Source: Azolla caroliniana (taxonomy: Eukaryota > Plantae > Polypodiophyta). Taken from it: a stretch of DNA of 64,000 bases. Below are positions 13,982 to 51,062 of this stretch, in pieces. The first letter of the stretch is position 1. Every line of letters begins with the position of its first letter. Made by a program: the position numbers and the translations under genes. The DNA is taken from contig JBHGNT010000012.1 of NCBI GenBank assembly GCA_043228905.1, positions 6,262,001 to 6,326,000 of the forward strand, in the 5' to 3' direction. Under the pieces are notes generated by a model, which did not search any database, was not told the origin of the DNA, and saw only the letters and a list, made by a program, of their open reading frames with translations.

Positions 13982-14003
13982 GGAGGCGGCAGAAGAGCAA
14001 AAG

Positions 14004-24591: not shown

Positions 24592-24629
24592 TGGCACGCC
24601 CGTGGGACAGTACCTTGTACGTCGAACCC
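24592..24629 (+). promoter_or_regulatory. Oppositely oriented tRNA-Arg(UCU)-complementary site at the PPT position of element A
   Basis: TGGCACGCCCGTGGGAC-[AGTACCTTGTACG]-TCGAACCC begins 2 nt inside the 3' LTR edge. No purine tract abuts the LTR on the coding strand. Confidence 0.75.
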
Positions 24630-24928
24630 TTCTCGGCCCCTTCATTGTTCACCCAAATTGTCCAAAATACTTGGTTCGAGAATTTCCGCTTGTTCTTTCG
24701 GTTGTGGTTGTTGCGGCTGTGCTTGCTGCTGCTGCTGTGATTGCGGTTGTGACTGAGGTTGCTCCGACTGCTCTGCTTGCTGCTGCTGCTCCATTTGTCT
24801 CGCTGACTCCGGCTGCTCCGTTTGTCTCTCTGGCTCCGGCAACTCCGTTTGACTGCTTCCGGTCCGGTCTCCTTCCAGTAACGGTTCCTCATCACTGAGG
24901 TTGACCGTAACTGGTTCTCGTTCTTTCT

Positions 24929-30349: not shown

Positions 30350-33139
30350 TTTCTCTCCCCGGATCCGGGACCTCTCGTAGCTTTCAAACTGAATCTGCGC
30401 CTCCAGCCTGTCGTCGTCCAGCTGAGCTACAAGTTGCCGGACTTGCTCTAGTTGGTCCTCTGCCAAGGCTTGAAAGTCTTCGGCAAGCTCATCCCTTATG
30501 CCGGTGAAGTCTTCGGAAGTCAGCATATAGCAATCATCTCCCTCCTTCCGCCGGTTCTCTACGTCAGCCCGGAGCAATTGGAGTTCCGCCGCGTTTGTGG
30601 CCCACTTGGTCCACCATTTGACGGAGCCGTTGTCAATCAAGCTCTTGGTCTGGTTCAACCAGGCCCGCATTATATCCTGGATGCGACTTGCTCCCATCTG
30701 TGCTCTGCTTTCCACCACTTGTCGCTCCTCCTTCAACTGCTTGATGAGGTTTGCCGTATCCTCCGCCTGCTCTCGGTAGCGCGTCAGCTGCCCTTGATAT
30801 GTCGTTTGCAGCCTCTGCAGTACCTCCGCCGCTCTTTCTTTTTCCGCCTGCTGTTGCCTGAGGAGCTCTGTCCGAACCTTCTCCGCCTCTTCCAACCGTC
30901 TTCTGTTTTCCGCTTGTTCCTTGGCGAATGCGGTTGCGGTCCGATCAACTGCTTGCCGGAGCTCATCCATCCGTTCCTTGTGCTCCGTTTGCAACCGTTT
31001 ATACTCCCGGTGCAAGTTCTCAAATTCCTCTGTTTTTAGTTTGAGCTTGCCGTTGATCTGGCGATGGTTCCGGTCCTCCCGGTCCTTTACCTGCCGGAGT
31101 TCCTCTTTCAGGCGCTCTACTTCTGTTTCGGCGTTCCTCCGGAGTTTCTCCTTCTCTTGCAGCATTTTCTCTTTCTCCTCCTTGAGCCGGTCGTACGCTT
31201 GGTGGCCTTTCCGTAAGCTCTCCTCGGCCCGGCGTAGATTCTCAGCAGTCTTTTTGAGTTCTGCCTCCGCTGCCGTTTTCAGTTCTCTTTCGCGGCTCCT
31301 CAGCGCTTCTTGGGCAGCAAGCTCATCCTTTAAATCCGCAAGCTCTTGGGCTTGTGCCGCATTTTTCTCCGGAACGGTTTCCGTTGCCGGGGTCTGATTG
31401 CTATGTACAGGTTGATCCTCTTTATTCTGTACATTGCCCGGAGTCACCGGTGCTTGGACTTGTGTTTCCCTTGTGACCCTGTCCAAGTCTTGTTCAAGGC
31501 TCCGGATTCTGGACCGGGCCGTCTCTAGATCTACGGTTGTGACGAGCAACCGTTCCTGGTGCGCTCTCTCTTCCGCCTCTATATACTCGACCACTCCGGC
31601 GATTTGCTCGCCTACCCATCGTAGCCACATGCTACTGGTGCCTTGTTGCTGTCCTGGTCGGGTCGGCTCATTCACCGTGGAATTGTCTGGCCTGATTGCC
31701 TGCATGTGCCGTTCTGGTTCTACTCCTTGGCCGCCGTGTGCTCTGGCTGGGCTCGCCGGCTGTTGAGGTCCGGTTCTCGCCGTCTCCGGAGCCGTTGGAC
31801 TGACTTCTTCTATAGAAGTCGACAAGACCGGTTCCCTACGCACCGGTTCCGGTTCTTCCCTTGTGGTTTGCTCAGGTTGAGTTGGGGGCGTCTCTGCCTC
31901 TCGCGGGTACGACCGCTCCCCTCCTGTCTCGGCGGTCCTACTTCTTGGCCGTCGTTGGAGGTGCTCTTCCGGCTCCTCCGTTTCCTCGTCCTGTGCCACG
32001 GCATGTTTCTGTGCCGTCAAGGGTTCCGGTTCCTTCTGTCCTGGTCTCCGTAAGGTTATCTTGACGGGTCGGACCGGTGACACCTCCTCCGGTTCTGGGA
32101 CCCGTTTCTTCCCTTTCGCCGCCTTCGACGCCAGCAGCTGCTGTCGTTTGGACGCCGGCTTCGAGGTGCTTCCTTCCGATACTCTTGGCCGCTTCTTTGG
32201 CTGGGCGGTCTCGACCGGCGGCACGAGCAATGTGATCCATTGAGCTACGGCGTGCCACAGCTTCCGGCCCTCCTTGCCGTCCTTCCCTCGTACCATGTCG
32301 ATTGCCATGCACAATCCGTCTGCAATCAGCACCGGCCAGTCCACCTTGACCCCTTCATAGGTGGCTATGATCATCCCTGCCCGATTTTTTGGCATGACAG
32401 GGGGTCGGGGGTACACGTGACCATACTCGTGGAGCACTCGAGCTATCTCCCTGAATAGCGGATCTTCGCCGCCCTGCGTCCGATAGCCTTTGCCAGCAAC
32501 AGAGTACTCACCGAAATATCGGGTGAGTTGCTCCGAGGTTGGGTTATCGATCTGAAAGATTCCTCCCTCCGGAAGGCCTGTTAGCGCGCGGATCGCTTCC
32601 TCGGTGATGACCTCTGTGGCGAGCTCCTTGATGACCCGGTCTGCTTCTCTGTGCGGCGGTGCCTCCATGATGGCCAAGAACCCTTCCAGTCCGTTTTGCC
32701 TGAACCATTTCCTGGCCGCTTCCGACAGCGTTTGTGGTTCCATGTCTGCTTCAAGGTCGAGGGACGATGGCGAGGTAGAGTGGTGATGAGGGTGAGAGCG
32801 AGAGAGAGAGCGTTCTGAGCGCGGGGGTTCTCTGCGTGCAGGTTCGCGTTTGCTCAGCTTCCACTGCCTTGGTGCTTCTGTGCTTCTTGGCTCGCGAAAA
32901 TAGAGGGTCTCCATGCGCTCTGTTTCTTCTTTGTGCGTTTTGGCGCCTTTTTCGAGCATGCACACGTCGTGTACTAATTTAGTATTAAGTGGCGTGGCGT
33001 CTCTTAAATGCCCACTACGTACCTTTTCGCGCCTCGCTTTCACACCCGTTCATACCTCGATTTTTAATGATTTGATTTTTTTTTTTATTTTTTTATTTTT
33101 TTTTTTTTTTTTTTTAATTTTTAATGACGGTGTGTGACC

Positions 33140-36100
33140 TTACACATCCGTAGGTCCCTCCGGACCCTGACCGTTTTCCTTACGGGTTGCCGTGTCTTCC
33201 TTCGTGTTTACTACGGGTTCCCCGTTGTCTTTTTCTTCCGGATCGATCCGTACCGATCCCGGACAGGTTCCTGGTGTAGTGCCGGTGAGCTGCATAAACG
33301 GGTTCTTTGGCATCGGTCCTTTATAGGGCTTTAGTCGAAATCCATTCACCCACTTGCCTAGTACTTCCCCGGCAAGTGTCCCTATCTGATAGGACCCGTT
33401 GTATTCCCGTGTCAGCCAATACGGGCCTGTCCATCTGAACCGGAGTTTACCCGGCATCTTGCCCATCCTCGTTTGGAATACTAGCACCGGCTTTCCGATT
33501 TCGAACATCTTTTCGTTACCTTTCCGGTGACGGTCAACGAACGCTTTCTGTCGTCGTTGCTCCAGTTCCATGTGGAGGATGCTGGCCAGCCGTTGCTCCT
33601 CCAGTTCGCATAGTGCTGCTAGCCGTATTTCCTCCGACTTCTTTTCATTCAGCCGTTCCCGTAGTTGGATCCGTAAGCTTGGTACCTGAAACTCGACCGG
33701 CATGACCGCTTCTAAGCCGAATGCTAACCGGAACGGCGTTGTCCGGATGCTCGTTTTGTATGCCGTTCTGTACGCCCATAGCGCACTATGGAGCTTTGTG
33801 TCCCAGTCCGTCCGGTTTTCATTGACAATTTTGCGGAGAATGTTCTGCAGCGTTTTGTTGGTGGACTCTGCTAACCCGTTCGCCTGTGGGTAATACGGTG
33901 TGCTTCTTTTATGGACCACGGCATAGAACGTTGTTAAACTTTCCACTACCTGGCCGAGGAAATGCCCTCCTTGGTCGCTGATCAGTTCAATCGGACATCC
34001 ATATCGGCACCAAATGTTCTCGTACAGGAATTTTGCTGTAGATGACGCGGTGTTGTCTCTCAGGGCCTTAGCTTCCACCCATTTCGTGCAATAATCCGTT
34101 GCCACGATGACATAACGATTACCCGTTCTCATTGCCGGTGGCTTGAACGGTCCGACAAAATCCAATCCCCACTTCTGGAATGGCTCTAGTGGAAGTACCG
34201 GTTGGTGTGGCATCCGTGCTTGCTCCGTTGGCTGGCCCATTCGTTGGCATAGGTCACATTCCTTAGCATACCTGACGGCATCTTTTAGCGTCGTGGGCCA
34301 CCATAAGCCGCTCTGCCATACCTTTCTTGCCGTCGCTTCCCCGGCATAGTGTCCTCCGGCAACCCCACAGTGTGCTTCCCGTAAGATTACTTCTTTCTCG
34401 TCACTACGGACTGCCCGTCTCCATATTCCATCTGCTCCTTTGTGGTAGAGAGTGTCCCGTAACAGACAGAAATTGCGGCTCTGCACCGCCAGTCGTTTCC
34501 TCTCGTCCCGGTTCATTTCCTCCGGTGGCAGGCCCGTGCTTAGGAACTGGTGCATGTTTGTCAGCCATTTATCTTCTGATGCCACCGTGTCGTCCGCTGC
34601 CGTTTCCGGGGTGATACGGAATAACTCCGCGTCCGGGAATTCATCCGCTACTCCGTCGCCTGGTTCTCCGGACTCTAACCGGCTCAGGTAGTCTGCTACG
34701 GCATGCTGGATACCGGGACGGTGGAAAATCTCGAATTCGAACTCCTGCAACAGCAAGGTCCAACGAGCCAACTTACCGGTTAGCGACGCCTTGGACACTA
34801 AGTACAGCAGCGCCGAGTGATCCACATGAAAGGAGAACTTCCTTCCCAATAGGTAGTGCCGAAACTTTGTGACACTGTAGATCATGCCGAGAGCCTCCCG
34901 TTCTGTCGTTGAATAGTTCTTTTCCGCTTGGGACAGCTTCCGGCTGGCGTAATATACCGGCCGGTACCATTTGGGCTCCGTAAGCTGCATTAAGGCGCTG
35001 CCAATAGCGATGTCGGACGCGTCCACGAACACATGAAATTCCTTGCTCCAATCCGGAGGCTGCACGACGGGTGCTTGCGATAAAAGTACCTTCAGGGCAT
35101 TGTATGCCTTATCCTCCGTATCCGTCCATTGGAACGGTGTCCGATGTACCGCGGTGTGTAATGGTGTAGCCAAATCAGCCAAGTGACGGAGCATCCGGCT
35201 GTGCCACCGGATCTGTCCTAAGAATCGGCTTAGTGCTTTGGCTGTTTTCGGTGCCGGTGCCCCTAGTATGGCGTTTACTTTGTCCGGGTCGACCGCAATG
35301 CCCTCCTTACTTACAATGTGTCCCAGCAATATTCCACTTGAAACCCCGAAGATGCATTTTGCTGGATTTAAGCTTAGCCGGTATAACCTACACTTTTCAA
35401 GGCATAACCGGAGGTGCTGCAAATGGTCTTTTCCCCGGCTATAGACTGCAAAATCATCCAGGAAAACTTGCATGAAGGCAGGAATGTAATCGCCGAAGAT
35501 CTCCATGATGATTCGCTGGAAAGTTGCTGGTGCCGTTTTTAGGCCGAACATCATCACTTCAGCCACAAACACCCCCCATTCGGTGACGAACGCTGTCTTC
35601 TCCTGGTCTTCCGGGTGCATCCGGATTTGATTGTACCCGCTGAACCCGTCTAGAAAGCTATAAACTTCATGACCGGCGACGGCATCCAGTACTCCATCCG
35701 TGAACGGAAGAGGGAATGCATCCGTAATTGTGGCGGCATTTAGTTTCCTGTAATCTACACACACACGGATTTTACCGTTCTTCTTGGGGACGACGACGAT
35801 GGGGCTCAGCCACGTCGCTTTCTTTACCGGCCGGATGAAGCCCACTCTTAGGAGTTTGTCGATTTCCTCTTTTACCTTGGCGGCGTAGTTGGGGTTCATT
35901 CGGTATCGTCTTTGCGCCACTGGTTTCGCGTCCTTGCCTAAGTGGATCTGATGCTGATATAATTGAGGGTCCAGCCCTCGCATGTCCTCGTATGACCAGG
36001 CGAATACGTCGCGAAACTCCGTGAGAAGTTTGATCATTGCCGCTTTATCTTCCGGCTTCATTTCTTTGGCGATGTGAACCGGCTTTGATTCGTCCTTGCT

Positions 36101-39004
36101 TCCTAGGTTCACTTCGTCGAGCTGGGATGCTTTTACCCGTTGGGAAACGGCCATTTCCCGTTCCAACGCTTCCTGTGCTTGCCGTAATTCCCGAATCGCA
36201 TCTTTGTCTGGTTCGGCTTCGGTGTCGTCCCGCTGCGGCAAGTATGCGGCTACGGCTTCAGCTATGTCGATCTCGAAGAGTGGTACGATCTTCGGATGTT
36301 CCTCCAAGTACTGGGCTTCTTCGTCGTCCGCCAATCCTTCAAGCATGTTCACACATTCCGCGTACAGCGGTGTGCATTCCTTACCGTTGCTCGTCCGTGG
36401 TTGTGTCGGAACCCGGACCTTGGCTTTTCCGCGCCGGAAGGTGATCATGTTTTTCCGCCAATTTTGCTTGATGTGTGCAGTTTTCAACCATGGTCTGCCC
36501 AGCAACAGTGGGTACGCGCCTTGCGCCTGTAGCTGCAGCACTACAGCCGAGATGTGAAATGTGTGGCCTCCTATGGTGACTTCCAATTTCCGTATTAAGC
36601 CCGTCGGCCGTACCGAGCTCGTATCCGCCATCCGTAGCCAGAACGGGCATGGCTCCCATTCATGTATACCCAAGGCATCACACGTACGGAGGCTTATTAC
36701 GTTCACCCCGGAACCTCCATCGATTACTGTGCCGGGAAGTTCGTGCCCTTTGACAATAGTTGTAATCACCGGACTGCTAGTGTCCACTACCGTCGGTCCC
36801 TCTTCCGGGTTCGAGAAGAGGACTGGTGCTGGTGGGGCTATGCCGTCTGTCATGCCCGTTTTTAGCCCTTCCGTAAATCGCGGCACGAGCTGCAAGAGTC
36901 TTCCTAACGGCAACGTGATCTGACATTCTTGCAGTGCTTGCCATGTCTCGTTTTCTGGGTGGCTACCGCCGGCACTCCCTATGGTATTTGCCTTTTGCCG
37001 TTCCGCGTCCGCGACGTTCTTTTCATTGGCTTCCTTCACCCATTCCGTCGCCTGCCTTCGTATGGCCTCTTGTGTTTCCCACTCTTTGGCCATGCCTTTC
37101 GACCGTGTGGTTACTTGCTGTACATCCGTCACTTCCGGAACCACCATATTAACTGCTGGTCGTTTCTCGTAGCTCTTTACCGGGCACTGGTTACTGTAGT
37201 GGCCTTCCTGCCTGCAGTAGTAGCAGTACTCTTTACGGGTATCGCTGGATTCAGCATTGCTGGTAGCCGGAGTTGGTCCCGTAGCGAGTGGTGCGTTCGG
37301 TGCCGGTTGGCTCCTTGGGATTCCATGTTCCGGGTCCCTAGGGTGACCACCTTTCTTGAAGTTTCGTTTCTTATTATTCTTATGTTTATTTCGGTAGTCC
37401 GGCCGTGGTGGATCGTAACATCGGCCGTAGTCCTCCTGGTGCCTTCGGTAACCAGGGGAATGGTCTCTATCGTATTGCTCATGTCGCCTGTTGGGCTCCC
37501 GATAACGGTCCGATCGCTCATACCGGTCGTAGTTATCACGCCGATTCCCGTACCGGCCATCATTCTCTTGCCTGTCTCCGTACCGGACATCTTGTGCCGG
37601 TGGGTACCGGTTCCCTCTTTGCCAACGATCGTCATCTTCGTCTCGGCTGCTTCTTGGCTCGATCCGTCGGACGGGTGGTGCTTGTCGATTTAACAGGTTG
37701 TACTCGCACCGGTCCGTTGTATGACTCTTGGATTGACAAATCACACACTGAGTGCGCATGGTGCACTCTACTGCCGAGTGTCCGGCATTCAAGCAGATTG
37801 TGCATTGAATTGCCTGCCGGAACCGGAGATCTTCCTCGGTGGGTAATGCCCGTTGCAGTGTTCCCAGCGTAAGCCATGAGCTTGTCTTTTCCATTTCTCT
37901 GACCCGGTCAATGACCTGGTCGATGGTGCATCCTCGAAAGTCGATTACCGTACACACCGTGCGTAACGGTTCCCGGAGTGCGTTTAAAAATATCGTCCGT
38001 AATTCCTCCTCCGGGGGTGCACGGGCAAGCTGGCTATGCATTCGTTGGAAACGGATGACGAATTGGGGAATGCTTTCCCCTGCCTCCTGCCGGATCGTAT
38101 AAAACAGCCCCACCATTGTCGTCTGGTCAACCTCCTTGTGGAAAAAATGCAAGAATTTTGCTTTTAATTCTGCAAATGTTGTGATGGTCGCCGGGTCCTG
38201 CGATCGCCGCCATCGTGTCGCTGGTCCCTCCAACGTGACTCCGAATTCCGCTATCTTCGAGCGTTCTTCTTCCTCCGGTGTCATTCGCTGGGACGTGTGA
38301 TTTGCTTCCCATGTCTGCTCGAAGTCATCCACATGTGCTTCCGCATCCGGATCATCGCGGTACTTTGAGTATTGGAACGGCATGTCGTCGTCCAGTATTA
38401 AGCAGCGGTTTAGTGGCGTTTGTTGATATCTTTCCGGTTCTTTCTCCGGTTTCACTTCCGGTTCTTTTGCCGGTCCTTTTTCCGGTTCTTTTTCCGGCTC
38501 TTCTTCCGGTACCTTTGCCGGGAAGTTCGTTGGTGTTGGTGGCTTTGCTTCTTCCACTTCCGGTGTTGGTGGGTTGACGGCTTCCGTTTGCGGTTCCGGA
38601 TAGCCCTGGTTGCGCGGTTCCGGTTCTGGAGTCGGCACGGTATCCGATCCGTCGTCTTCCGGGCCGCCGGGGGTATCGTTGCTGCTCCGGTAGTTCGTGT
38701 GCACGCTGTATCCCCCTTCGGAATCTGATTCGTAGGCTGAAAAGGCTTCTGCCTCGTTTTCTCCGCTTGCCAGCGCCTCCAGGAGTCGTTCGGTTTCCCG
38801 GAGACTACTTAGACTGCTGCCGTCGTCCTGGTCGCGAGTTTGCCGTAACCGGAGAGATTCCTCCGCGACTCTCCGGATCTCGTTGGAGAACGAACGATCC
38901 GAGCGAATTTCCTGCGCTGCTTGCTGGAAAGTCTCACGCCGTCTTTGCCGTTCGGCGAGGCGTCGAGCTCGGTCTGTACCCAAGTCGTGCGTTGGTCTAG
39001 TCAT
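33140..39004 (-). CDS. gag-pol: Gypsy gag-pol polyprotein, 1954 aa (gag, 3 zinc knuckles, PR, RT, RNase H, IN)
   Basis: Three CCHC motifs, PR VIDGGSGVNVI, RT FLDGFSGYNQI...MMFGL...FLDD, RH VDASDIAIG...ADYLSR, IN H..GH..CDLC, SDQGGHF, NGLAES, WTGPY. No chromodomain. Confidence 0.96.
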   Translation of the reverse strand: MTRPTHDLGTDRARRLAERQRRRETFQQAAQEIRSDRSFSNEIRRVAEESLRLRQTRDQDDGSSLSSLRETERLLEALASGENEAEAFSAYESDSEGGYSVHTNYRSSNDTPGGPEDDGSDTVPTPEPEPRNQGYPEPQTEAVNPPTPEVEEAKPPTPTNFPAKVPEEEPEKEPEKGPAKEPEVKPEKEPERYQQTPLNRCLILDDDMPFQYSKYRDDPDAEAHVDDFEQTWEANHTSQRMTPEEEERSKIAEFGVTLEGPATRWRRSQDPATITTFAELKAKFLHFFHKEVDQTTMVGLFYTIRQEAGESIPQFVIRFQRMHSQLARAPPEEELRTIFLNALREPLRTVCTVIDFRGCTIDQVIDRVREMEKTSSWLTLGTLQRALPTEEDLRFRQAIQCTICLNAGHSAVECTMRTQCVICQSKSHTTDRCEYNLLNRQAPPVRRIEPRSSRDEDDDRWQRGNRYPPAQDVRYGDRQENDGRYGNRRDNYDRYERSDRYREPNRRHEQYDRDHSPGYRRHQEDYGRCYDPPRPDYRNKHKNNKKRNFKKGGHPRDPEHGIPRSQPAPNAPLATGPTPATSNAESSDTRKEYCYYCRQEGHYSNQCPVKSYEKRPAVNMVVPEVTDVQQVTTRSKGMAKEWETQEAIRRQATEWVKEANEKNVADAERQKANTIGSAGGSHPENETWQALQECQITLPLGRLLQLVPRFTEGLKTGMTDGIAPPAPVLFSNPEEGPTVVDTSSPVITTIVKGHELPGTVIDGGSGVNVISLRTCDALGIHEWEPCPFWLRMADTSSVRPTGLIRKLEVTIGGHTFHISAVVLQLQAQGAYPLLLGRPWLKTAHIKQNWRKNMITFRRGKAKVRVPTQPRTSNGKECTPLYAECVNMLEGLADDEEAQYLEEHPKIVPLFEIDIAEAVAAYLPQRDDTEAEPDKDAIRELRQAQEALEREMAVSQRVKASQLDEVNLGSKDESKPVHIAKEMKPEDKAAMIKLLTEFRDVFAWSYEDMRGLDPQLYQHQIHLGKDAKPVAQRRYRMNPNYAAKVKEEIDKLLRVGFIRPVKKATWLSPIVVVPKKNGKIRVCVDYRKLNAATITDAFPLPFTDGVLDAVAGHEVYSFLDGFSGYNQIRMHPEDQEKTAFVTEWGVFVAEVMMFGLKTAPATFQRIIMEIFGDYIPAFMQVFLDDFAVYSRGKDHLQHLRLCLEKCRLYRLSLNPAKCIFGVSSGILLGHIVSKEGIAVDPDKVNAILGAPAPKTAKALSRFLGQIRWHSRMLRHLADLATPLHTAVHRTPFQWTDTEDKAYNALKVLLSQAPVVQPPDWSKEFHVFVDASDIAIGSALMQLTEPKWYRPVYYASRKLSQAEKNYSTTEREALGMIYSVTKFRHYLLGRKFSFHVDHSALLYLVSKASLTGKLARWTLLLQEFEFEIFHRPGIQHAVADYLSRLESGEPGDGVADEFPDAELFRITPETAADDTVASEDKWLTNMHQFLSTGLPPEEMNRDERKRLAVQSRNFCLLRDTLYHKGADGIWRRAVRSDEKEVILREAHCGVAGGHYAGEATARKVWQSGLWWPTTLKDAVRYAKECDLCQRMGQPTEQARMPHQPVLPLEPFQKWGLDFVGPFKPPAMRTGNRYVIVATDYCTKWVEAKALRDNTASSTAKFLYENIWCRYGCPIELISDQGGHFLGQVVESLTTFYAVVHKRSTPYYPQANGLAESTNKTLQNILRKIVNENRTDWDTKLHSALWAYRTAYKTSIRTTPFRLAFGLEAVMPVEFQVPSLRIQLRERLNEKKSEEIRLAALCELEEQRLASILHMELEQRRQKAFVDRHRKGNEKMFEIGKPVLVFQTRMGKMPGKLRFRWTGPYWLTREYNGSYQIGTLAGEVLGKWVNGFRLKPYKGPMPKNPFMQLTGTTPGTCPGSVRIDPEEKDNGEPVVNTKEDTATRKENGQGPEGPTDV

Positions 39005-39038
39005 CCATTACCGTCGTTCGCTGCGAGGAAGCAGGAAT

Positions 39039-39049
39039 CGTGGTCGCCA
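39039..39049 (-). promoter_or_regulatory. Minus-strand primer-binding site of element A (tRNA-Arg(UCG)-like, 10-11 nt)
   Basis: TGGCGACCACG lies 6 nt after the 5' LTR and is conserved in C. It matches the recalled plant tRNA-Arg 3' end GTGGTCG-CCA. Confidence 0.7.
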
Positions 39050-39478
39050 AAACTGTGTTATTCGCTTAGCCGGACAAGGCCTAACACAAGGTGTCACGGA
39101 GACACTTCACCAAAGGGTGATTACGGCATAGGATTAAGATTCAACGATTACACCGACTTACGTAGGTTACACAATTAGATTGCTTTGGTTAATTACACGC
39201 GTAAGATATAACAGTGATTACAGAACGGAAATCAAGACAGAAGTATAAACATCAGAATCTCTATTAATTATCCGCTGTCATTACAATAGGGTCCGGGCCT
39301 TTAAATAGGTTTCCGGCCCGTAGTACAAAACGGTGTCTCTCGCACCTATTCGGGATCCGTCCGGATCTGGAACGGCATACCGTTTCCAGTCCGTCCGTCC
39401 ACACTATGCTCATTTACAACCATCTAATTAATTCCGTATTTTGGACTCCTTGCCGGCCGGTAACACATGCCAAAATAG

Positions 39479-39746
39479 TGTTGATGGTTTTAGGGTTAGG
39501 GTTAATGATTATGGTGATAAAGATAGGAATAGGGTTAGGGTTTGTTAATAATACGAATATGGAAATGATTAGCATTGCGAGATTGATGATGACATTGATA
39601 GTGATGAAGATGGAAACAATGTGATGGCGAGATTGATAAGCATTATGGGGTTGAGAGCATGATTACGATGTGCATTGAGAAGCATTGTGGGGTGGGGGGT
39701 GGTGCCTAGAATGGCTCCACCCCCCTCCCAAGGGGTTCAACGTTAT

Positions 39747-39782
<36 letters not shown>

Positions 39783-41570
39783 GAGAGAGAGAACTATTGC
39801 TTCTTCTTTTTTTCATTCCCCATAAGGGGTTAATATAGGTACAAAGGAGTAGATACACAAGGGTGCAAGACCCTTGGCCATTCACACCTAGTCACAAACT
39901 CACACCTCTTTATATCCCTCACACTCTCACTTACATTCACACTCATAATCGTATGACATTACACATACATATATCTTTCACCCGCACTTATCACACTTAA
40001 CAATCACCCGTACGTCTCGTACGGTAACACAATATGGCACGCCTGTGGGAAAGTGCCTTGCACTTCGATCCCACATGCCTTGATCATAATCTTTCTTCGA
40101 CCGGAACTTCCATCGGTCCTCTCAACGATCGACTCCCTCGATCGGAGCGCTTGACTCGAACATCTTTGTCGGTCAGCGAATCTTTATCGACACGAACATT
40201 CTCGTTCTGTCGGCACACGAACTTGGTAACATACTTCGGGTTGTCAAAAAAACGTTGTATGTATAGTCTTCTTTGTATCTTGTGAGTTGTGTGTGGTTTG
40301 CGTCCATTTCTTTTAGGTCCATGAGTTTTTGAAATTTTTCTTATGCCCCTATCTTTCTCTTTTTATTTCTTTATAATAATATTATTTTAAATTTCTTTTT
40401 CCTCTCTCTTTTTTTTTCACGTTCTTTCTTTTCTTTTCTTCTCATTCTTCCTTTTTCTTCATGCGTTTTCTCCCGTTTCTCTCTCTTTTCTTGTTCTTAA
40501 TGTTTCTCATTCTTTCTTCATCTTTCTTCTTCCTAATGTTATATTCATCTTTATCTATTGTTGTTTGGTTGCCATCCGATCACCAACATCTATTTCCAGC
40601 CCTTCCGACCATTTCCTTGGTCGTTTGTCCGGCCGCCGGCCATTCCACCGCTCCGCTTCATTGTTCGACGATTTCGGCTATTCCGGCCGTCTTTCTCACG
40701 TCGATATTTGGCCGCCGGGGCTGTTTTGCCACTCTAGCCATTCCGACGCCGCCACTCTTGGCCGCCGCAATTTTGACCGCTATTTGGCCCATCCGGCCGT
40801 CGTTCGGCCGTTGCTTTTGTTGGTTTCGATCATCGGTTGGCTGCCACCACGATCGACATCGCTCTTCGTCCACTTCCCTCCATTCATTCCGATTGCCGCT
40901 GTTCATTCCGATTGCCGCTGTTCATTCCGATTGCCGCCGTTCATTCCGGCCTCTCTCCGGTCATTGTGGCCACTCCTCGGCCACTCCGGTTGCTCGTTCG
41001 ATCGTCTCGATGCTATTCTTCTTTTTTTCTTTGCCATCATCACGGGCTCCGTTCCCTTATTCCATCACCGTCTTCGTTTGTCTCCATTTCCCGCACCACT
41101 CTTTCTCGCACATTCGTATTGCCACATCTCATTCATTGACATTATCTAACATATTGTAACCGCCATTTACCATACATTGTTGATTCGATTTCGCCCACAT
41201 TATTATCACCATTTATCGCACATTTCACATTTACGTTGTCATCGTGCATCCTTCTTTGACTTCTTCTCTAAGGATGGTCGGCCGTAGGGCGTGCCAAAAT
41301 AGTGTTGATGGTTTTAGGGTTAGGGTTAATGATTATGGTGATAAAGATAGGAATAGGGTTAGGGTTTGTTAATAATACGAATATGGAAATGATTAGCATT
41401 GCGAGATTGATGATGACATTGATAGTGATGAAGATGGAAACAATGTGATGGCGAGATTGATAAGCATTATGGGGTTGAGAGCATGATTACGATGTGCATT
41501 GAGAAGCATTGTGGGGTGGGGGGTGGTGCCTAGAATGGCTCCACCCCCCTCCCAAGGGGTTCAACGTTAT

Positions 41571-41606
<36 letters not shown>

Positions 41607-41624
41607 GAGAGAGAGAACTATTGC
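39479..41624 (-). mobile_element. Element B: non-autonomous (TRIM/LARD-like) LTR element with two opposed tRNA-Arg sites and a truncated 5' LTR
   Basis: LTR 39479-40029 and a partial copy 41303-41624 are identical over 322 bp by eye. The 1.27-kb internal region is non-coding. TGGCACGCCC lies on minus at 41287-41296 and TGGCACGCCTGTGGGA on plus at 40035-40050. The LTR terminus GGTAACA is shared with A and C. Confidence 0.85.
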
Positions 41625-43583
41625 TTTCTTCCCAACAGATAGTGTCTAAACTTGGTGACATTGTAGATCATGCCCAAGGCCTCTCTTTCCGTTGTGGAAT
41701 AATTACGTTCTGCTTGAGACAGCTTTCAACTGGCATAATACACTGGCCGGTACCATTTCGGTTCTGTAAGTTGCATAAGTGCACTCCCGATTGCGATGTC
41801 GGACGCGTCAACGAACACATGGAACTCTTTAGACCAATCCGGAGGTTGCACCACCGGCGCTTGTGACAATAGTACTTTTAGTGCCCGGTAAGCCTTGTCT
41901 TCTGTGTCCGTCCATTGGAATGGTGTCCAATGTACCGCGGCATGCAATGGTATAGCTAGGTCTGCCAAATACCGGAGCATTCGGCTATGCCACCGAATTT
42001 GTCCTAAGAACCGGCTTAATGCCTTTGCCGTGGTTGGTTTCGGGGCCTCCAAAATAGCTTTGACCTTGTCCGGATCCACTACAATACCGTCCTTGCTCAC
42101 AATGTGGCCAAGTAACGCTCCACTGGACACTCCGAACACGCATTTTGCCGGGTTAAGGCTTAGCCGGTAAGCCCTACATTTCTTCAAACATAGTCCGAGG
42201 TGCTGAAGGTGATCCCCTTCCTAGCTATAAACACCTGCATGAATGCCGGACAACACTTGCATGAATGCCGGAATGAATTCTCCGAAAATCTCCATGATGA
42301 TCTGCTGGAAGGTTGCCAGCGTCGTTTTCAGTCCAAACATCATAACTACGGCAACAAAGACTCCCCATTCGGTGACAAAAGTGGTTTTCTCCTAGTCATC
42401 GGGGTGCATCCGGATCTGATTATAGCCGTTGAAACCGTCCAGAAAACTGTACACCTCATGACCGGCGACCGCATCCAAGACTCCATCCGTTGTCGTGAAG
42501 ATCCGTCACTACGCGCGGATCGTGAGGCGGAACCGTCGGGGTTCTGGACCAGAAGGATTTAGAGTCGATACAAGCTTTGGCGAGAAAGTACTTAAGATAG
42601 ATTGGGAAAGAGAGAAGTTGAGATTACACGATTGATTTGAAAACGAATTTCTTCCTCTTAATTTTCATAAAAAAAACCGTGTTTTTCTCCTCGCCCTTCC
42701 CTCTTTTATAGATGCTCTCATGCATATGATGCATGTGAGGGTACAAGACATGCATAAATTGCATGTTTGCCATTTGGCGCTTAAGTATTACATGTGGTGC
42801 ATGCTAACCATGTCACTCATTTTAGCACTCATGGATGAGAATTTACATGTAAAAGTACAATGATAGAAATATAATTTCAACTAAATATTATGGCTTAATG
42901 GTAAGCCATTTGACTCTTAACTTGGAGGTGCAAGGTTTGAATCCATACTTGCCCTCCTTGTATATGTAAATATGTATATATGTTTATATATTTATTTTAT
43001 CTAGTCGACACCGACAGCGGATGCCGACGCCGGATACCGCTGCCGCTGCCGGATGCCGACGCCGGATACCGGTGCCACATGCCGCCGCCGGATTGTGGTC
43101 GGATGCCGTCGGATCACCGGCTCCATCGCCGGTCCGGTTTTGGTTGGCCAAAACCCTTTTCGAGTAGCTAGCCACCTCCACTCTAAGTTCAAGTTACCTT
43201 GAACTCTCTATGCTCCACACATAGACACAAAGATAATATCTTTTGCTCCACCTTATATATGATGAGAGCCGTATTTGTCGTGCCTATGTGGGATATCTCA
43301 CAATTTTCTCTTTTCTTTTCACAAACTTTATACCCTCATATCTTGACATTTAGTTGTCCATTTCTCGTGTAATAAAGTGCATTCGAAACCTCCATCATTT
43401 TGTACTTAGATATTAAAAATGTTATCTTCACAATTATTGTATTACATGATTCATACTCGATTTTGTACGTTTTATGGGATTTTCACACTATTGCCGAAAA
43501 TCTTCACGACATCCACCCCCACCAAGCCGCACGTCCTCCGGTACATGCCAAGAAGAGAAGAAGTGAGATTTCGGCTACGATGA

Positions 43584-45810
43584 TCAATTAGATTCCTCCA
43601 TGTCTTCATTTTCATCCGGCCTATTATGTTCATCGTCGAGGTAATCGAGGTCAGGATCCTTGTCTTGTCTTTTCTTGAAAAGCTTTACTCTTTTTCCCGC
43701 AATGGGTACGGCCAACCTTGATCCGTCTAGTTCCGCAAGGTGGTATGTGGCATTATCGTTGGCACTTGTCACCACATACGGCCCGAACCATCTTCTTGCG
43801 AACTTCCTTGTTGTACTATGTTGATTGTCAAGGGTGTTGTCGTAGACCAAAACCCAATCCCCTTCTTCAATCTTCTTGGGACGAAGTCGATGCGTGTTGT
43901 CGAACCGAACTTTGTTCTTTACTCGGGCTGCCTTCATCATCTTTCGCGCTTTTTCTAAATCTTCAGGTCTTCTTTCAAGTTGCCTTATCCGCGCCGCTAA
44001 TAACTCTTCTCGGCTCATCTCGTTCTCCCACGGTATCGCTACCCATGAGGCGATCGTCCTTTCGATGGGCATAATCGGCTTTTGTCCATACATAACCTCT
44101 GTCGGCATATACCCTGTCACCGAGCTATGTGTCGTTCTATCGGCCCACAAGGCATAGGGTAATAGTCGTGGCCAATTCCCGACTCGACCGTTGCATGCCC
44201 GTACGATGGCTTTAACGATAGGTCCATGCCCTCGCTCGATCTTCCCATTTGCTTCCGGATTGTAGGCAGTCGTGAGGGAGAGCTTCACGCCTAGTCTTTC
44301 GAAGAGCTCCGTCGCTTCGTGCGCGTCCAACTCCCCTCGGTCGGCCACTATCTTCCCGACACATCCATATCGGCAAACAACATCTTCAAGTAAAAATTTA
44401 CAAACGGCTGAAGTCGTCTTATTTGTCAAGGCTCGTCCTTCCACTTGATTTGTCAAGTCTTCCCTTGCGAGCGCTAAGTACTTCATTTGTCCCACTCCCA
44501 TTGGCATCGAGACCAGATCCACCATCCATTTGAAGTGAATGGTGAGTGGGTATGTCGGCTTTAACTCATCACGATGACGTATATTTGAATATACTTGGCA
44601 AGTTTCGCATGTGGACACGAAATGGAGTACATCTTTGTACATGCTTGGCCACCAGTACTTCTCCTTCAACTTTTCGAACGTCGCCCATGTTCCTCTATGA
44701 CCTGCTCAAGCACTCTCGTGGAATTCGGTCATCAGCGTCTCTTGCTCTTCTTTCTTTACCACCACTCGACGTGGTATTCCTGTCCTTCTTTTTGGATGTC
44801 GCCAAAGGAATCCTCCCTTCAAGAAGTATCGGTAAGCTTTCTTTCGGATTCGTAGGGCCTCCTCCTTTGTCAACGAAGCATCTGTCGTCAATGTTCTTAG
44901 GAATCTACCGATGAGTAACCATTCTCCTTCGTACTCGTTCTCGTTGAAGGCGTGGAGGGTTTGCGTGTCCTGGTCTTCTGCCGACAATCGAGCCATCTTG
45001 AAGAAGTCGAGGGCGACATCTTCATCTTCCGAAACCATGTTACTTCCATTTGAAAATCTTGCCCTCGACAACATGTCAGCCATGGCGTTCTTCTTCCCTG
45101 CGATGTGACGGATCTCTGGGTTTAAAGACTTGATGTAGGCGATCCACCTTAGCATAGCAAGATCTGGGGTCGCACATCCCGATTTCTCGTGGGAAGAATG
45201 CGAAAGCCTTCCCATGTCTCTCAAGCATATCGCGAAACATTCGCTCGTCTTTAGGGAGAAGGAAATCCTCCTTTCCAACTCGTAGCTTCCCCTTCGTCTC
45301 TTTGGTGAAGTCATGACCTATCTTCTTCGGATCTCTTAAGCTTGGATCGTTAGCGACTTCCTTCATCTTTTGCCAGCTATCTTCCGGTAGCGGAACCGCA
45401 ACTGGCTTGATCTTCTTATCCACCGTTTTATATTTCGTGTTGATGTCAACTTCCTTCATCGAGATGCCATGACGGTATTCATCGATGATAGCGTACATGT
45501 TGACGGAGTTAATCGAAATCACGCATTGGTTGTGAAGATAGCTCAAGTCCACGACGTCCTCGATATCGCCGATGGTGTCGTTAAATGAGGCTTCTTCCAT
45601 AATATGAGTCACGAACTCCCCTTCTTCTATTATGTTCTCTTCTTTCAGCATCTTCTCGAATTCTTGTATCCGGTGCTTGTGCTTCTTGTCGGGTAGTACT
45701 AGTTTACATGCGCCACTAGGTGTGACACATGTTGCTTCTCCTTGCAATCCACGCACTCTTCTTTCTTGTGGGGTCTTGTGATTGCTCGGACTATTTGTGC
45801 CCCATGCTTC
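43584..45810 (-). pseudogene. pol: Element F pol remnant (pre-RT region fused to RNase H end, then integrase)
   Basis: KYKTVDKKIKPVA...HGKAFAF..REIG is fused to GCATPDLAMLRW...ADMLSR. The integrase core is intact (ADRGE, NGKIERGH, WFGPY). Confidence 0.88.
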
Positions 45811-45821
45811 AATAGTCCGCT

Positions 45822-48024
45822 CTAAAAATCCGAGGATTCGCCTCCGAGACTATCTCGATTCCTTTCATGATTGGCTCGCACTGTTAGGAATTGGACCGAT
45901 CTTTGGTTGTCAAGACTCTTTATTCGTGCGAAGGCTGCTCCATTATCGAACACTTTGGTCTCCATCCGAGATGATGTGATATTAGGTTGCCCTAGGATGA
46001 CAGGATGCGACGCTGATTCTTGTACGAAGAAGTGTTGATCCATCTCCACATCCCCGATCGTGACTTTGACATTGGGACAAGCTCCGTACAAGTCCTCCGT
46101 AGACTTTGTTGCCGCGCGAATCTTCCATCCGTGGTTTGTATTGATTGGCCATCTTCCCTTTTTGTAGAAGTCGGTTGACATGAGGTTGATCTCCGAGCCG
46201 TGGTCGATCAAGGCTACCACGGTCTCTTTCTTCTCCTCGATCTTCACCGGCGTCTCCGTTGTCGCTCGTGCCCAATGAGGTCGACTGTAGTGGTTGTCCA
46301 CCATATCTTCATCGATTTCATCTCTTGCCATCGTTATGGCATTCGTTTTTGCTTTTTGCGGCTTCTCTTCTTCCTCGTCCGATTGTTGTCTCTTTCTCTT
46401 TACAAGGTCCACGATCGTGTCATGGAACTCCTTCTTCGTAATGCCAAGCAATTCCCTCAAGGACAAAGTTACGTGGCTATCAAGAACTCGTTCTTCGAGA
46501 ATCTTCTTTAGGTCCGTCGTCTGCTCTATGTCCGACCTTAGCTTATAGGTAGGTATAGTCCTTGTCCTCCGAGTGAGGTCTTCGACACCAACCTTCACGG
46601 GCCGAACCGTTTCTTCAACTCGTATGCTCGGCTCCCCTTTTCGGCTTGATTCTCGTTCCTCCGTTTGTAAAGGTCGACTCGTCTCCACATCGTCCTTCTT
46701 TTTCGCGTTCCTTGTTTCATGTCTTTTTGATGGGCCTTGCTCTTCTATTCTCTTTCTCTTTTCTTCGACGAACACCTCGTGGTTGTCGCACATCACCTCT
46801 GCGAGTATGGTGTTGTCATCCACCGGATCCGACCACCCGGTTATGCATTGCACGTTTCGGTCCGCAAGCTCTACCTCGTTCGATGTGACTTTTCCCTTCT
46901 TCTCATATTTGAGAACAGAAGTCCAAAACTTTGCTCCCGCTCTAGCAGCTTCAGTCTTGTCTTTCCCGACTCTTATTCCGGCCGACGCAGCATAGTGCAT
47001 CGCATCCACATGAGTCGCATCGGCATCCTCCATAGATCTCTTCATTCCTCCTCTTCCGAAATTCACCCGTAGGGGTCTTCTAGTCTCGCTTGAGCAGATC
47101 ATGTTGTCCTCTATGTATACGATATTTTGTCGAATCGCCTCTCGAAGGCTCGTACAATCCCTTCTCATGTGGTCCATGCTATCGCACCACACGCATCTAA
47201 AGGGTTCTTTTCCTTTAGGGCCCCGACGATTCATGTTGGCTAGCGTGACCTTCTCGAACTTCTTCGCTAGCTCTTCAATGATGTCGTCATCAATCTTCTT
47301 TTCTTCCATGTTACTTTGTCTGCGGCTCAGCTACTTTCGGCGTTCTTGCTTTCTCCGTGGTAGTCGGTCCCATCAAGTCGGTGTCATCAACCCATTGGCG
47401 ACGCTTGTCAAGCCTATTGCATGCCCGCTTCACCGCGATCCAATCCGCTACGAGCCCATTTGCTTGGGTATCATCTTCGAGAAGAGTCCCCAACTCCCAT
47501 CTATCCTTTATGTCCACGGCCTTCAAGAAGTACAAAGTCTTGTCCTCTTCAAGCAATACTTGGTCCGTATTGGGGAGACGACTAAACATCTGGTCGAATT
47601 CGTCGTACACCCTCGAGACGCTCATCTTCTTATTCTTCTTCTCTATCCACTTCATAAGGGCATGTCGAGTCATCCTCGTTGAGTCTTCAGTCACGAACTC
47701 CGCTAGTATCGTTTTCTCGAACTCGGACCATGTTGTCTTTCCTTCTTGAAGCTCGATGACGCGTCTTTGGATGTTGTTGGCGACAACTCTCTTGAAGCTT
47801 GCGATTTGACGTGCCTCGGACACGTCCCTTTGATTCATCTCCCTCTTATATGCATCAAGGAACTTCGTAACGTTCCTTCCATCGAATTGGCCCTCGAGCT
47901 CTACGACACGATCAACAGCCTTCTCCACGCTCGCGTCGTTGTCCCAAGATCTCATCATTTGCTTGACGATTAGCATCATCCTTTCGAGCTCTCCCGCTTG
48001 GTTGCTTGAGGACGCCATCTCCAA
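45822..48024 (-). pseudogene. gag: Element F gag-protease with one frameshift at about 47310
   Basis: CVWCDSMDHMRRDC knuckle and ALIDHGSEINLM protease. It ends GGESSDF* like E. Confidence 0.85.
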
Positions 48025-48485
48025 GTATTAATCTCGACTTGATCCTTCCTACCGCCTCGTTCACGTCGGGTTCACCACTTAATTATGTCGTGAAGATCCG
48101 TCACTACGTGCGGATCGTGAGGCGGAACCGCCGGGGTTCTGGACCAGAAGGATTTAGAGTTGATAAAAGCTTTGGCGAGAAAGTACTTAAGATAGATTGG
48201 GAAAGAGAGAAGTTGAGATTACACGATTGATTTGAAAACGAATTTCTTCCTCTTAATTTTCATAAAAAAAACCGTGTTTTTCTCCTCCCCCTTCCCTCTT
48301 TTATAGATGCTCTCATGCATATGATGCATGTGAGGGTACAAGACATGCATAAATTGCATGTTTGCCATTTGGCGCTTAAGTATTACATGTGGTGCATGCT
48401 AACCATGTCACTCATTTTAGCACTCATGGATGAGAATTTACATGTAAAAGTACAATGATAGAAATATAATTTCAACTAAATACTA

Positions 48486-48545
48486 TGGCTTAATGGTAAG
48501 CCATTTGACTCTTAACTTGGAGGTGCAAGGTTCGAATCCATACTT
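48486..48545 (+). promoter_or_regulatory. tRNA-derived Pol III A/B-box module inside the F LTRs
   Basis: A box TGGCTTAATGG (48486-48496) within a TGGCTT/AAGCCA stem, a CTCTTAA loop and B box GGTTCGAATCC (48529-48539). A second copy at 42891-42944 has a C>T change in the B box. Confidence 0.55.
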
Positions 48546-51062
48546 GCCCTCCTTGTATATGTAAATATGTATATATTTTTATATATTTATTTTATCTAGT
48601 CGTCGGTTCGCCGGATACCGTCGCCGGATACCGGTGCCGACGCCGGATGCCGCCGTCGGATGCCGTCGGATCACCGGCTCCATCGCCGGTCCGGTTTTGG
48701 TTGGCCAAAACCCTTTTCGAGTAGCTAGCCACCTCCACTCTAAGTTCAAGTTACCTTGAACTCTCTATGCTCCACACATAGACACAAAGATAATATCTTT
48801 TGCTCCACCTTATATATGATGAGAGCCGTATTTGTCGTGCCTATGTGGGATATCTCACAATTTTCTCTTTTCTTTTCACAAACTTTATACCCTCATATCT
48901 TGACATTTAGTTGTCCATTTCTCGTGTAATAAAGTGCATTCGAAACCTCCATCATTTTGTACTTAGATATTAAAAATGTTATCTTCACAATTATTGTATT
49001 ACATGATTCATACTCGATTTTGTACGTTTTATGGGATTTTCACACTATTGCCAAAAATCTTCACGACACCGTGAATGGAAGTGGGAAGGCGTCAGTTACC
49101 ATAGCCGCATTCAATTTCCGGTAGTCGACGCAAACTCTTATCTTACCGTTATTTTTCGGTACTACAACTATCGGACTGAGCCATGTGGCTTGCTTTACCG
49201 GTCGGATGAAGCCAACCCTTAGCAACTTGTCGATTTCTTCTTTGACTTTTGTTGCGTAATTCGGGTTCATCCGATAACGCCGTTGCGCTACCAGTTTGGC
49301 GTCTTTACTCAGATGTATCTGGTGTTGATACAACTGAGGATCGAGTCCCCACATGTCCTCATAGGACCAGGAGAACACATCGCGAAATTCTTTTAGGAGT
49401 GTGATCATTGCCGTTTTGTTCTCCGGGGTCATTTCCTTGGCGATTTGAACCAGTCTTGCGTCCTCTGTGGTACCTAGGTTTACCTCTTCTAGTTGGGATG
49501 CTTTTACACGCTGTGACACTGCCATTTCTCTTTCTAGTGCCTCCTATGCTTGCCGTAACTCCCGGATCGCTTCTTTATCCGGTTCCTCGTCGGTCCCGTC
49601 CGGTTGCAGTATGTACGGTGATACTGCTTCCGCTACATCAATTTCGAACAGCGGTACAATCTTCAGATTTTCCTGTAAGTATTGATCGACCTCTTCATCT
49701 GCCAATCCTTCCAGCATGTTGACACATTCCGCATATAGCGGCGTCAATTCATTGTCGGTACACGACCGTGGTTGAGTCGGTACTCGCACTTTCGATTTTC
49801 CACGCCGGAACGTAATTATATTCTTCCTCCAGTTTTGCTTGATGTGTGTTGTTTTTAACCAAGGGCGTCCCAACAATAGTGGGTAAGCTCCCTGAGCCTG
49901 TAGCTGGAGAACTACTGCCGAAATGCGAAATGTGTGACCCCCGATGGTCACTTCCAGATCACGTATTAATCCGGTCGGCCATACTGAGCTTGTGTCCGCC
50001 ATCCGAAGCCAAAACGGGCATGGTTCCACGTCATGGATTCCTCTAAGAGTGTTACACGTTCGGAGGCTGATCACATTCACGTCGGATCCTCCATCAATAA
50101 TCGTGCCGGGTAGCTCTTTTCCTTTCACGATGGCTGTGATTGCCGGACTGCTCGTGTCTACTACCGCCAGTCCTTCCTCCAAATTTGAAAAGAAAGCCGG
50201 AGTCGGTGGTGTGTCGGCTACCGTCCTTCCTGTCTTCAGTCCTTCCGTGAAGCGTGGTACCAGTTGCAATAGCCGGCCTAACAACAGCGTTATTTGGCAT
50301 TCTTGTAACGCCTGCCATGTTGGGTTTTCGGGCTGCCCTATGTCGGTGAGCTCTTCAGCATTCTCCTTTTGTTGTTCGAGCTCTACCACATTCCACTCGT
50401 TTTCCTTCTTCACCCATTCAGTTGCCTACTTCCAGATGGCTTCTTGAGTTTCCCGCTCCATGGCTTTGCCTTTTGATCTTGTAGTGACTTGTTGTAAGTC
50501 TGTGACTTCTGGGTCTACCATGTTCACCGTTGGTCGCTTGTCGTAGCTCTTCGCCGGACATTGGTTACTATAGTGGCCTTCCTACCGGCAATAATAGCAG
50601 TATGCCTTCCGGGTGTTGCTAGATTTGGCGTTTGTGCCCCCACCCAGTTGAGGTCCTGTGGTAAGTGCTTGGTTTTGGTCCAGTTAGCTGCTTGGAGCGC
50701 CCTTTTCTTGTTCCCGTGAATGACCCCCCTTTTTGTTGAAATGACGTTTCTTTCTGAAATTCTTTTTGTTTCGGTAACCTTGACGGGGCTGGTCGTCATA
50801 CTTGCCATAGTCTTCCCGTCGTTGGTTGTAACCAGGGGAGTGATCCTGGTTGTATCTCTCGTACCGTCCATTATAGTCCCAGTATCTATCATGTCTGTCA
50901 TACCAGTCATAAGTGTCTCTTCGATCCCTATACCGGACATCTTGTGCCGGCCGGTAGCGCTCCTCTCGCTGCCGGCGTTCTTCTTCTTCCTCCCGGTTGC
51001 TTCATGGTTCAATTTGCTGGACCGGTGGTGCTTGCCGATTTAACAAGTTATACTCACACCGT

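Follow-up and report, generated by a model that had tools for sequence, protein, structure and literature searches.

The 64,000-nucleotide stretch of Azolla caroliniana contig JBHGNT010000012.1 analysed here (positions 6,262,001 to 6,326,000, assembly GCA_043228905.1; hereafter the window) carries two adjoining long terminal repeat (LTR) elements, A and B, in each of which a short tRNA-like sequence interrupted by a hairpin abuts one LTR (Table 1). Element A, which spans 24180-39467, is a minus-strand Ty3/gypsy element, as its gag-pol open reading frame (ORF) and a further one downstream, ORF2, both lie on the minus strand; an ESM Atlas search with ORF2 returned weak Streptophyta matches only, none of which gives a function. 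Element B is a non-autonomous LTR retrotransposon that has LTRs and a primer-binding site (PBS) and lacks gag and pol: its sole long ORF has no Pfam match, and in B-like loci of other contigs tblastn with A's proteins found no match save for a plus-strand reverse transcriptase (RT) segment about 4 kb from the site in one locus, L038. In its second copy the B LTR repeat extends over only 340 bp (39468-39806 = 41292-41631).

The site of B reads TGGCACGCCTGTGGGAA / AGTGC-CTT-GCACT / TCGATCCCACA (40035-40075) and that of A TGGCACGCCCGTGGGAC / AGTAC-CTT-GTACG / TCGAACCC (24592-24629), both exactly as quoted in an initial annotation of the window, which had taken them for a two-part tRNA-binding site with a looped-out hairpin. 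The annotation's remark that A and B otherwise share little also holds, since BLAST comparison of the LTR-plus-flank regions gives a sole significant match, namely the site together with the last LTR bases CGGTAACAC (A 24582-24629 against B 40022-40072; 42/51 identical, E=1e-7). For the core 9-mer TGGCACGCC, the window contains 5 occurrences where 0.27 would be expected (0/100 shuffles), and an nhmmer search with a profile of the motif recovered the two known sites and no further copy there. Read in the sense of A's genomic RNA, the order is a T-arm-like sequence, the hairpin, ..CCCACGGGCGTGCCA and then the LTR (TGTGTTACC); read on the plus strand, the element of B looks like a PBS.

Table 1. 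Features of elements A and B and of other LTR elements in the window
Feature	Positions	Strand	Remarks
A 3' LTR	24180-24591	-	99.5% identical to 39049-39469
A 3'-end element, homolog of that of B	24592-24629	-	hairpin 24609-24621; outer stem partly decayed
A extra ORF (ORF2) after pol, 924 aa	30269-33043	-	no Pfam family; interrupted by nested copia 24928-30349
A polyprotein ORF (gag, protease, RT, RNase H, integrase), 1954 aa	33140-39004	-	Pfam; includes gag, zinc knuckle, RT, RNase H and integrase
A true PBS	39031-39049	-	TGGCGACCACGA (39049-39038) plus conserved extension; 4 nt past the 5' LTR; identical in L033, L052 and L088
A 5' LTR	39054-39467	-	self-comparison of the window
B 3' LTR	39478-40029	-	sense start TGTTACC, end ..CAACAC; then TATTTTGGCA at 39477-39468 = spacer + first 5 nt of B PBS
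B spacer, CCA to 3' LTR	40030-40034	-	3 nt when the LTR start is TGTGTT
B 3'-end element	40035-40075	-	sense order: T-arm 5' half 40074-40065, hairpin 40064-40052, tRNA nt 60-76 to CCA 40051-40035
B outer stem = tRNA T-stem	40045-40074	.	GTGGG 40045-40049 with CCCAC 40070-40074
B inner hairpin	40051-40064	.	closing pair A40051-T40064, A40052 bulged, stem 40053-40056/40060-40063, loop CTT 40057-40059
B internal region	40076-41286	-	without gag, pol or ORF2 homology
B true minus-strand PBS	41287-41296	-	TGGCACGCCC, followed by TACGG; relatives read TGGCGACCAC in the same context
B 5' LTR remnant	41302-41631	-	U3 side short by about 222 nt
Three gypsy elements	13308-20320, 42491-49068, 52259-59949		tRNA-Trp-type PBSs (TGGTGAACCCGAC); polypurine tracts ending GGGGGNGGA
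Nested copia	24928-30349		initiator tRNA-Met PBS; polypurine tract ending GGGGGAGTT

Copies of the site and their place in the element

To describe the site beyond the window, metagenome contigs were scanned with the exact pattern TGGCACGCC-N-GTGGGA, 12-16 free bases, TCGA, which returned at least 120 loci; those listed comprise about 37 GC-rich bacterial chance matches and 83 plant-like contigs. The plant-like contigs named among the first 80 matches belong to one set of ENA assemblies, and the copies are probably from the same or a sister species. Alignment A1 was built from the listed matches and holds 63 distinct, deduplicated metagenome sites plus A and B, 65 copies in all; statements on copies, loci and families below refer to the matches listed. 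The bases before TGG are an LTR end in 65/65 copies (AACACA in 30, AACACC in 14, ACAATA in 8 and close variants in 13), an end absent from the search pattern, and the distance from the ..ACA LTR end to TGG is 0-5 nucleotides (nt) in all of them. The listed motif was therefore always found beside an LTR edge and not met away from one, the very check that had been suggested at the outset. Independently of the pattern, when contigs from a related organism are aligned to B they break exactly at 40034/40035 and pass into a different LTR ending ..CCGGCCAACAC. No fewer than 6 divergent families retain the site, as do non-coding derivatives; its retention in the latter, as first noted for B, now extends to B-like copies that lack coding homology, and may mean, as was suggested at the outset, that it is needed for replication.

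In A the site adjoins the 3' LTR on the strand opposite gag-pol. Homologs of A's proteins likewise lie on the strand opposite the site in 46 independent metagenome loci (tblastn), ORF2 in 44 (28-70% identical). A few hundred nt separate the ORF2 C-terminus from the site in most of the 46, and about 2.5 kb in L019, where a second, degenerate site stands between. Several contigs also show the start of gag across that LTR, after the conserved true PBS TGGCGACCACGATTCCTGC; the lone exception to the layout is L038, whose sole match is the plus-strand RT segment mentioned above. Because the tblastn loci have this layout in common, the order pol, ORF2, tRNA-tail copy, 3' LTR is, on sequence comparison, a character of the lineage as a whole.

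For B, the strand follows from its relatives. In the B-like contigs L113, L078, L085, L107 and L009 the other LTR, read on the strand opposite the site, gives ..AACAC-N-TTT-TGGCGACCAC(T/A)ACGG, a PBS and spacer that are those of the autonomous elements. Since the true PBS of these copies is opposite the site strand, B is a minus-strand element and its site at 40035 a 3'-end element; an earlier treatment of the B repeats R1 and R2 as a full LTR pair, with B possibly on the plus strand, was dropped on the same evidence. The PBS position itself reads TGGCACGCCC-TACGG in the window's B, in L056 and in L086, its first ten bases having been exchanged for those of the 3'-site tRNA, and the TGGCACGCCC version stands directly after ..AAACACA in 8 loci of another non-coding family (L006 type). 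The short opposite-strand PBS first reported for B is thus present as described, and by comparison with the B-like copies it is a PBS switched to tRNA-Arg(UCU), the tRNA identified below.

These positions bear directly on the description of the site as an ordinary PBS, which the initial annotation had implied and which would make B a plus-strand element with a plain minus-strand primer site at 40035. That an LTR end, a spacer and a TGG with 16-17 nt of tRNA complementarity follow one another on the plus strand is just what such a site would offer, but the homologous sites are opposite the gene strand in A and the 46 loci, and in the B-like copies the lineage's true PBS is on the other strand and at the other LTR, so that we regard this explanation as scarcely credible. 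In A and the 46 loci the site does not lie 3' of the 5' LTR on the coding strand, where the true PBSs are separate sequences; for A directly, and for B through homology, it is placed antisense beside the 3' LTR, at the position of the polypurine tract (PPT). Because of this orientation, any tRNA pairing would be with minus-strand complementary DNA (cDNA).

The position is that of a PPT, as CCA abuts TGTGTT in the autonomous families, and the extra spacer bases number 2-3 in B-type copies (ATA, TTA or TA) and 0 in other families. Measured from the lineage's TGTGTT terminus, the spacer of B is 3 nt and not the 5 nt first given, although the site does adjoin the LTR as stated. The composition is not that of a PPT, since purines make up only 7/15 of the last sense bases ahead of the LTR. 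As controls, four further LTR elements of the window have G-rich PPTs (GGGGGNGGA or GGGGGAG type) along with tRNA-Trp or initiator tRNA-Met (tRNAiMet) PBSs. Purine-richer stretches about 40 nt upstream were considered as the PPT and rejected: the tRNA copy would then fall inside the LTR, and A's 5' LTR starts TGTGTT.

Match to tRNA-Arg(UCU) and covariation of the hairpin

The tRNA is known here only from a retro-copy with a few mutations: ARAGORN, run on the fetched loci, finds in the plant-like contig L010 (2079-2154, minus strand) a complete 76-nt tRNA-Arg(TCT) with CCA. It stands 3 nt away from an LTR terminus, TGTGTTA, and the opposite terminus of that LTR bears the hairpin site. Read on the coding strand, this copy is an antisense fossil of the whole tRNA at the true PBS, and it indicates that RT read through the entire primer. 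The first block of the site corresponds to tRNA nt 60-76 minus one base, either C65 or C66 (fossil ..CCCGGTGGG, sites ..CCCGTGGG), the antisense fossil having one extra G, and the second block, TCGAACCCA, matches nt 58-50 of the antisense fossil in 9/9 positions; 13 extra bases separate the partner of A58 from that of G59, and the hairpin stem takes in G59. By this match, the site copies tRNA-Arg(UCU) nt 49-76 in the same sense, carries the hairpin within the T-loop and has its CCA abutting the first LTR base. A tRNA register without the deletion (T-stem TGGGA/TCCCA) was also tried and rejected, as it leaves a T-loop of 4-5 nt.

The match to the antisense strand of the tRNA-Arg(TCT) fossil type is continuous over 10-11 nt and continues for 5-6 more past a 1-nt bulge. 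The assignment of the flanking blocks to the 3' part of tRNA-Arg(UCU) is thus upheld by the 9/9 T-arm match of the second block, while the 25-28 nt of pairing originally proposed stand in part: both blocks match, but the pairing is broken up, with a bulged tRNA base separating about 10-11 bp from about 5 bp and the hairpin separating the latter from about 10 bp more, and its resumption past the hairpin, complete for TCGAACCCA, is half decayed in the second block of A (CCCTT). The free position inside the first block is only C or T, either of which pairs with G in trans. ARAGORN found no tRNA gene in the window, Rfam gave no family for either site on either strand at E<=10 beyond noise, and the sites show no cloverleaf or 5' acceptor strand upstream, features that a tRNA gene, a tRNA-like structure or a short interspersed nuclear element would be expected to have.

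A separate resemblance concerns the hairpin, whose 5' half and loop (AAGTGCCTT, 40051-40059) are identical to antisense nt 21-29 of the L010 fossil in 9/9 positions of the alignment preferred by MAFFT. These nucleotides form the junction of the D-arm and anticodon stem of tRNA-Arg(TCT), and the match has a post hoc probability of roughly 0.004; it may be a trace of the origin of the insert, a third tRNA contact or chance.

The inner stem covaries. In A1, pair 33-40 is GC in 53 copies and AU in 9, pair 32-41 is UA in 56, GC in 7 and AU in 1, and pair 31-42 is GC in 53, GU in 4 and AU in 1, whereas position 29 pairs best with 44 (CG 28, AU 20, UG 5), a fit that leaves the invariant A30 bulged. 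Once the 29-44 pair is adopted, pairing covers 92% of cells and the alignment reaches a covariation score of 0.222; shuffled alignments give 0.112 (0/500 attain the observed score) and slid partners 0.02-0.085. Double changes occur at 4/5 inner-stem pairs across the 65 copies, which are related sequences ascertained by the pattern, and the family stems are GTGC/GCAC, GTAC/GTAC, GGGC/GCCC and AGGC/GCCT, with GAGC/GCTC once. The compensatory G-C versus A-T pair first noticed between A and B is therefore real and extends to the 65 copies, and the proposal of a conserved, structured cis element with a looped-out covarying hairpin agrees with significant covariation in the larger alignment. The first block, described as 17 nt long, is indeed common to A and B, but its 17th base belongs to the hairpin because it covaries with the last base of the insert; in C-type copies that base doubles as the pairing partner of tRNA G59.

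The outer stem, GTGGG/CCCAC, is paired in 92% of cells, with its free half 75-98% conserved. All changes but one in its three central G-C pairs are C-to-T and keep a G.T pair on the plus strand; the stem is no fair test of the folding strand, because its 5' half was fixed by the search pattern. In B the two-tier hairpin is the predicted optimum for both DNA (-12.6 kcal/mol, z -3.9) and RNA (-20.4 kcal/mol, z -2.9).

Surroundings of the A/B block

A and B form one head-to-tail block (24176-41623) inside a related gypsy element, H, the halves of which occupy 20395-24175 and 41624-~52207 and read on from one to the other at the insertion (A-equivalent positions 34834/34838). No target-site duplication was found at the block, and the 3' LTR of B is followed by TATTTTGGCA and then directly by the start of A's LTR; by its arrangement the block looks like unfinished reverse-transcription products that were joined and captured. 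H has no site in the window, its 3' end not being recognisable there.

In four related organisms the stretch 39804-40224, made up of the U3 side of the B LTR, the site and the adjoining 190 nt at the internal end, is present in far more copies than the remainder of B, and many contigs stop at 40224, just 5' of a second GGTAACA (40225-40231); internal duplications of about 90-100 nt lie at 40087-40224. The B LTR also contains telomere-like TTAGGG/TTTAGGG repeats (39480-39545 and 41304-41370) and a (GA)n microsatellite (39750-39795). In L113, two tRNA-Pro(TGG) gene-like sequences (5196-5269 and 6205-6276, minus strand) adjoin B-like LTR pieces, and one of them is cut near its 3' end where the telomere-like TTTAGGG repeats of the LTR begin. 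Elsewhere in the window, an array of ~69-nt and ~200-nt tandem repeats occupies 10523-11577.

Candidate primers for the plus strand

We propose, with a probability of about one half, that host tRNA-Arg(UCU) binds the site in minus-strand cDNA and serves as the plus-strand primer of a Ty3/gypsy lineage that has no PPT. Following minus-strand synthesis and RNase H digestion, the cDNA would expose the complement TGGCACGCC(C/T)G, a mirrored PBS, of which the two-tier hairpin would keep the T-arm part folded and leave 10-11 nt single-stranded. These exposed nucleotides would pair with host tRNA-Arg(UCU) or with an 18-nt fragment from its 3' end, and the 3'-OH of A76 would be extended straight into U3, giving a left cDNA end that starts TGTGTT; the primer would be a host tRNA ending ..GGGCGUGCCA. 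Judging by the true PBSs that read TGGCACGCCC, this tRNA is available to the lineage as a primer. The non-autonomous B would have kept only the cis parts, namely LTR termini, PBS and site, and would therefore be able to use the proteins of autonomous relatives.

Retroviral RT ceases to copy its primer tRNA at 1-methyladenosine 58 (m1A58), and the insertion of the hairpin between A58 and G59 is suggestive of a link with that stop. In its full form, which we hold somewhat more tentatively than the priming step, the proposal is that the lineage and its non-coding parasites may employ two tRNA primers, no PPT and a mirrored PBS split by a hairpin, placed at A58/G59 as an adaptation to the folded, m1A58-modified T-loop. 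At its most cautious, the tRNA-tail copy at the 3' end suggests, without proving it, that the second DNA strand is started by a tRNA in this lineage.

Several points weigh against this proposal. The case is made from genomic DNA, in which the tRNA-DNA junction is inferred; the pairing needs a bulge because the site is one base short of the tRNA, and two tRNAs are needed in the particle because the minus-strand primer of the A-type elements is a different one. Because copies were ascertained by a pattern exact at 19 bases, conservation is gauged at the other positions only, and the metagenome copies are all from one set of ENA assemblies. Single-sequence folding is significant for B only, not in two other copies and poorly in A, whose outer stem reads CCCTT, and for that reason the case for structure rests on covariation and not on energy. 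Inner-stem wobble pairs (6 G.T against 4 A.C) do not tell the folding strands apart.

The same position would also suit a primer cut from the element's own RNA, if a tRNA-identical stretch of genomic RNA were spared by an RNase H tuned to a tRNA-CCA/DNA junction and remained on the minus-strand cDNA as a non-purine stand-in for the PPT, with no host tRNA annealing. The exact abutment of CCA and LTR fits such a self-derived primer equally well, the A-type families (PBS TGGCGACCACGA) would then do without a second tRNA, and the released oligonucleotide could also account for the PBS switches. It leaves without reason, however, both the host-tRNA identity across families whose ORF2 is 28-70% identical and the T-arm 5' half kept beyond the hairpin, and the L010 fossil is a full tRNA-Arg(UCU) acting as primer in the lineage. 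A tRNA acting in trans is favoured because the tRNA identity is kept across very divergent families, because the free position is only C or T, either of which pairs with G, and because true PBSs have repeatedly come to match it, which its presence in particles would predict; we therefore consider a self-derived primer unlikely. Lower still do we place a role in the RNA itself, in which a mimic of the T-arm and acceptor would pair with the 5' PBS, circularising the genome, or serve as a handle for protein or packaging, by analogy with the 5'-3' bipartite PBS of Ty3, with the plus strand primed by something else. In B and the L006-type family the 5' PBS (UGGCACGCCC) and the 3' motif (..GGCGUGCCA) are indeed complementary over 9-10 nt, and the RNA fold of B is strong. 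Ty3 is reported to use 3'-end sequences in priming (PMC5371799), which we count in favour of such a role.

This pairing is not general, because the A-type autonomous PBSs, which correspond to another tRNA, do not match the motif and could not pair with it; furthermore, the acceptor part is same-sense with the tRNA, which leaves no bridging through it, the missing PPT stays unexplained, and the C-to-T changes of the outer stem would make A.C mismatches in the RNA sense and G.T pairs on the other strand, albeit in a biased sample. The site might finally be a neutral leftover of aberrant reverse transcription, a misplaced copy of a primer tRNA hitch-hiking by the LTR. Such read-through does occur in the lineage, given the whole-tRNA fossil of L010, and the 9/9 match of the hairpin's 5' half to antisense nt 21-29 hints at a scrambled tRNA copy; its survival in at least 6 families that have diverged from one another, and in elements without coding capacity, the same junction every time, the compensatory changes in the hairpin and the lack of any PPT left for the job make mere hitch-hiking very improbable.

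The site combines traits of several known systems. As in the PBS of LTR retroelements, one strand complements the CCA end of a host tRNA, an LTR terminus lies within 0-5 nt, and the sequence is shared among families, as a partner acting in trans would demand; unlike a PBS, the site is antisense at the 3' LTR, with the complement present only in minus-strand cDNA, and it reaches into the T-arm, is interrupted by a hairpin and is not regenerated from the primer in each cycle. It lies immediately upstream of U3 with its 3' end at the first LTR base, as a PPT does, yet consists of tRNA-tail sequence with 7/15 purines. The 5'-3' bipartite PBS of Ty3 and the PBS of Ty1 with boxes 0, 1 and 2.1 also use the tRNA beyond its acceptor end: their contacts with tRNAiMet extend to the T and D arms, and in Ty3 involve sequences near the 3' end of the genome. 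There the RNA is complementary to the minus-strand primer, whereas here it is same-sense and, in A-type elements, belongs to a different tRNA; the site is accordingly no 3' half of a Ty3-type bipartite PBS, since the acceptor part is same-sense, the A-type PBS corresponds to another tRNA and only the near-palindromic T-arm could pair.

The first block, tRNA nt 59/60-76, is the part 3' of A58 and in that respect resembles both the 18-nt retroviral PBS, set by the m1A58 stop, and the tRNA-derived fragment tRF-3a, but here a hairpin stands at the boundary and the copy continues with nt 49-58. B, non-coding and high-copy with LTRs, PBS and a 3' element, recalls large retrotransposon derivatives (LARD) and terminal-repeat retrotransposons in miniature (TRIM), from which it differs only in the cis element and the switched PBS.

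In the literature we found no account of a tRNA copy in the place of a PPT, of elements without a PPT or of tRNA-primed plus strands, and a full-text search with 9-10-mers of the site returned unrelated primers only. Two candidate precedents do not apply: 'no PPT' in ATHILAfinder means that seeds were not found, and Neumann 2019 covers PBS types only.

To our knowledge, all LTR retroelements and retroviruses studied so far start their second strand from an RNase H-resistant purine tract of their own RNA. If the proposal is true, a tRNA-tail copy in place of the PPT would show that the plus-strand priming step is evolvable, and the lineage would offer a natural system in which to study the choice of plus-strand primers by RT and RNase H, with the covarying hairpin and its retention in B-type elements supplying defined bases to test. 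For annotation, tools that require a PPT, or that take any LTR-adjacent tRNA complement for a PBS, will mis-orient such elements. An LTR end followed by a tRNA site on both strands would, moreover, have a symmetry that recalls the old idea of tRNA-like tags marking the starts of replication.

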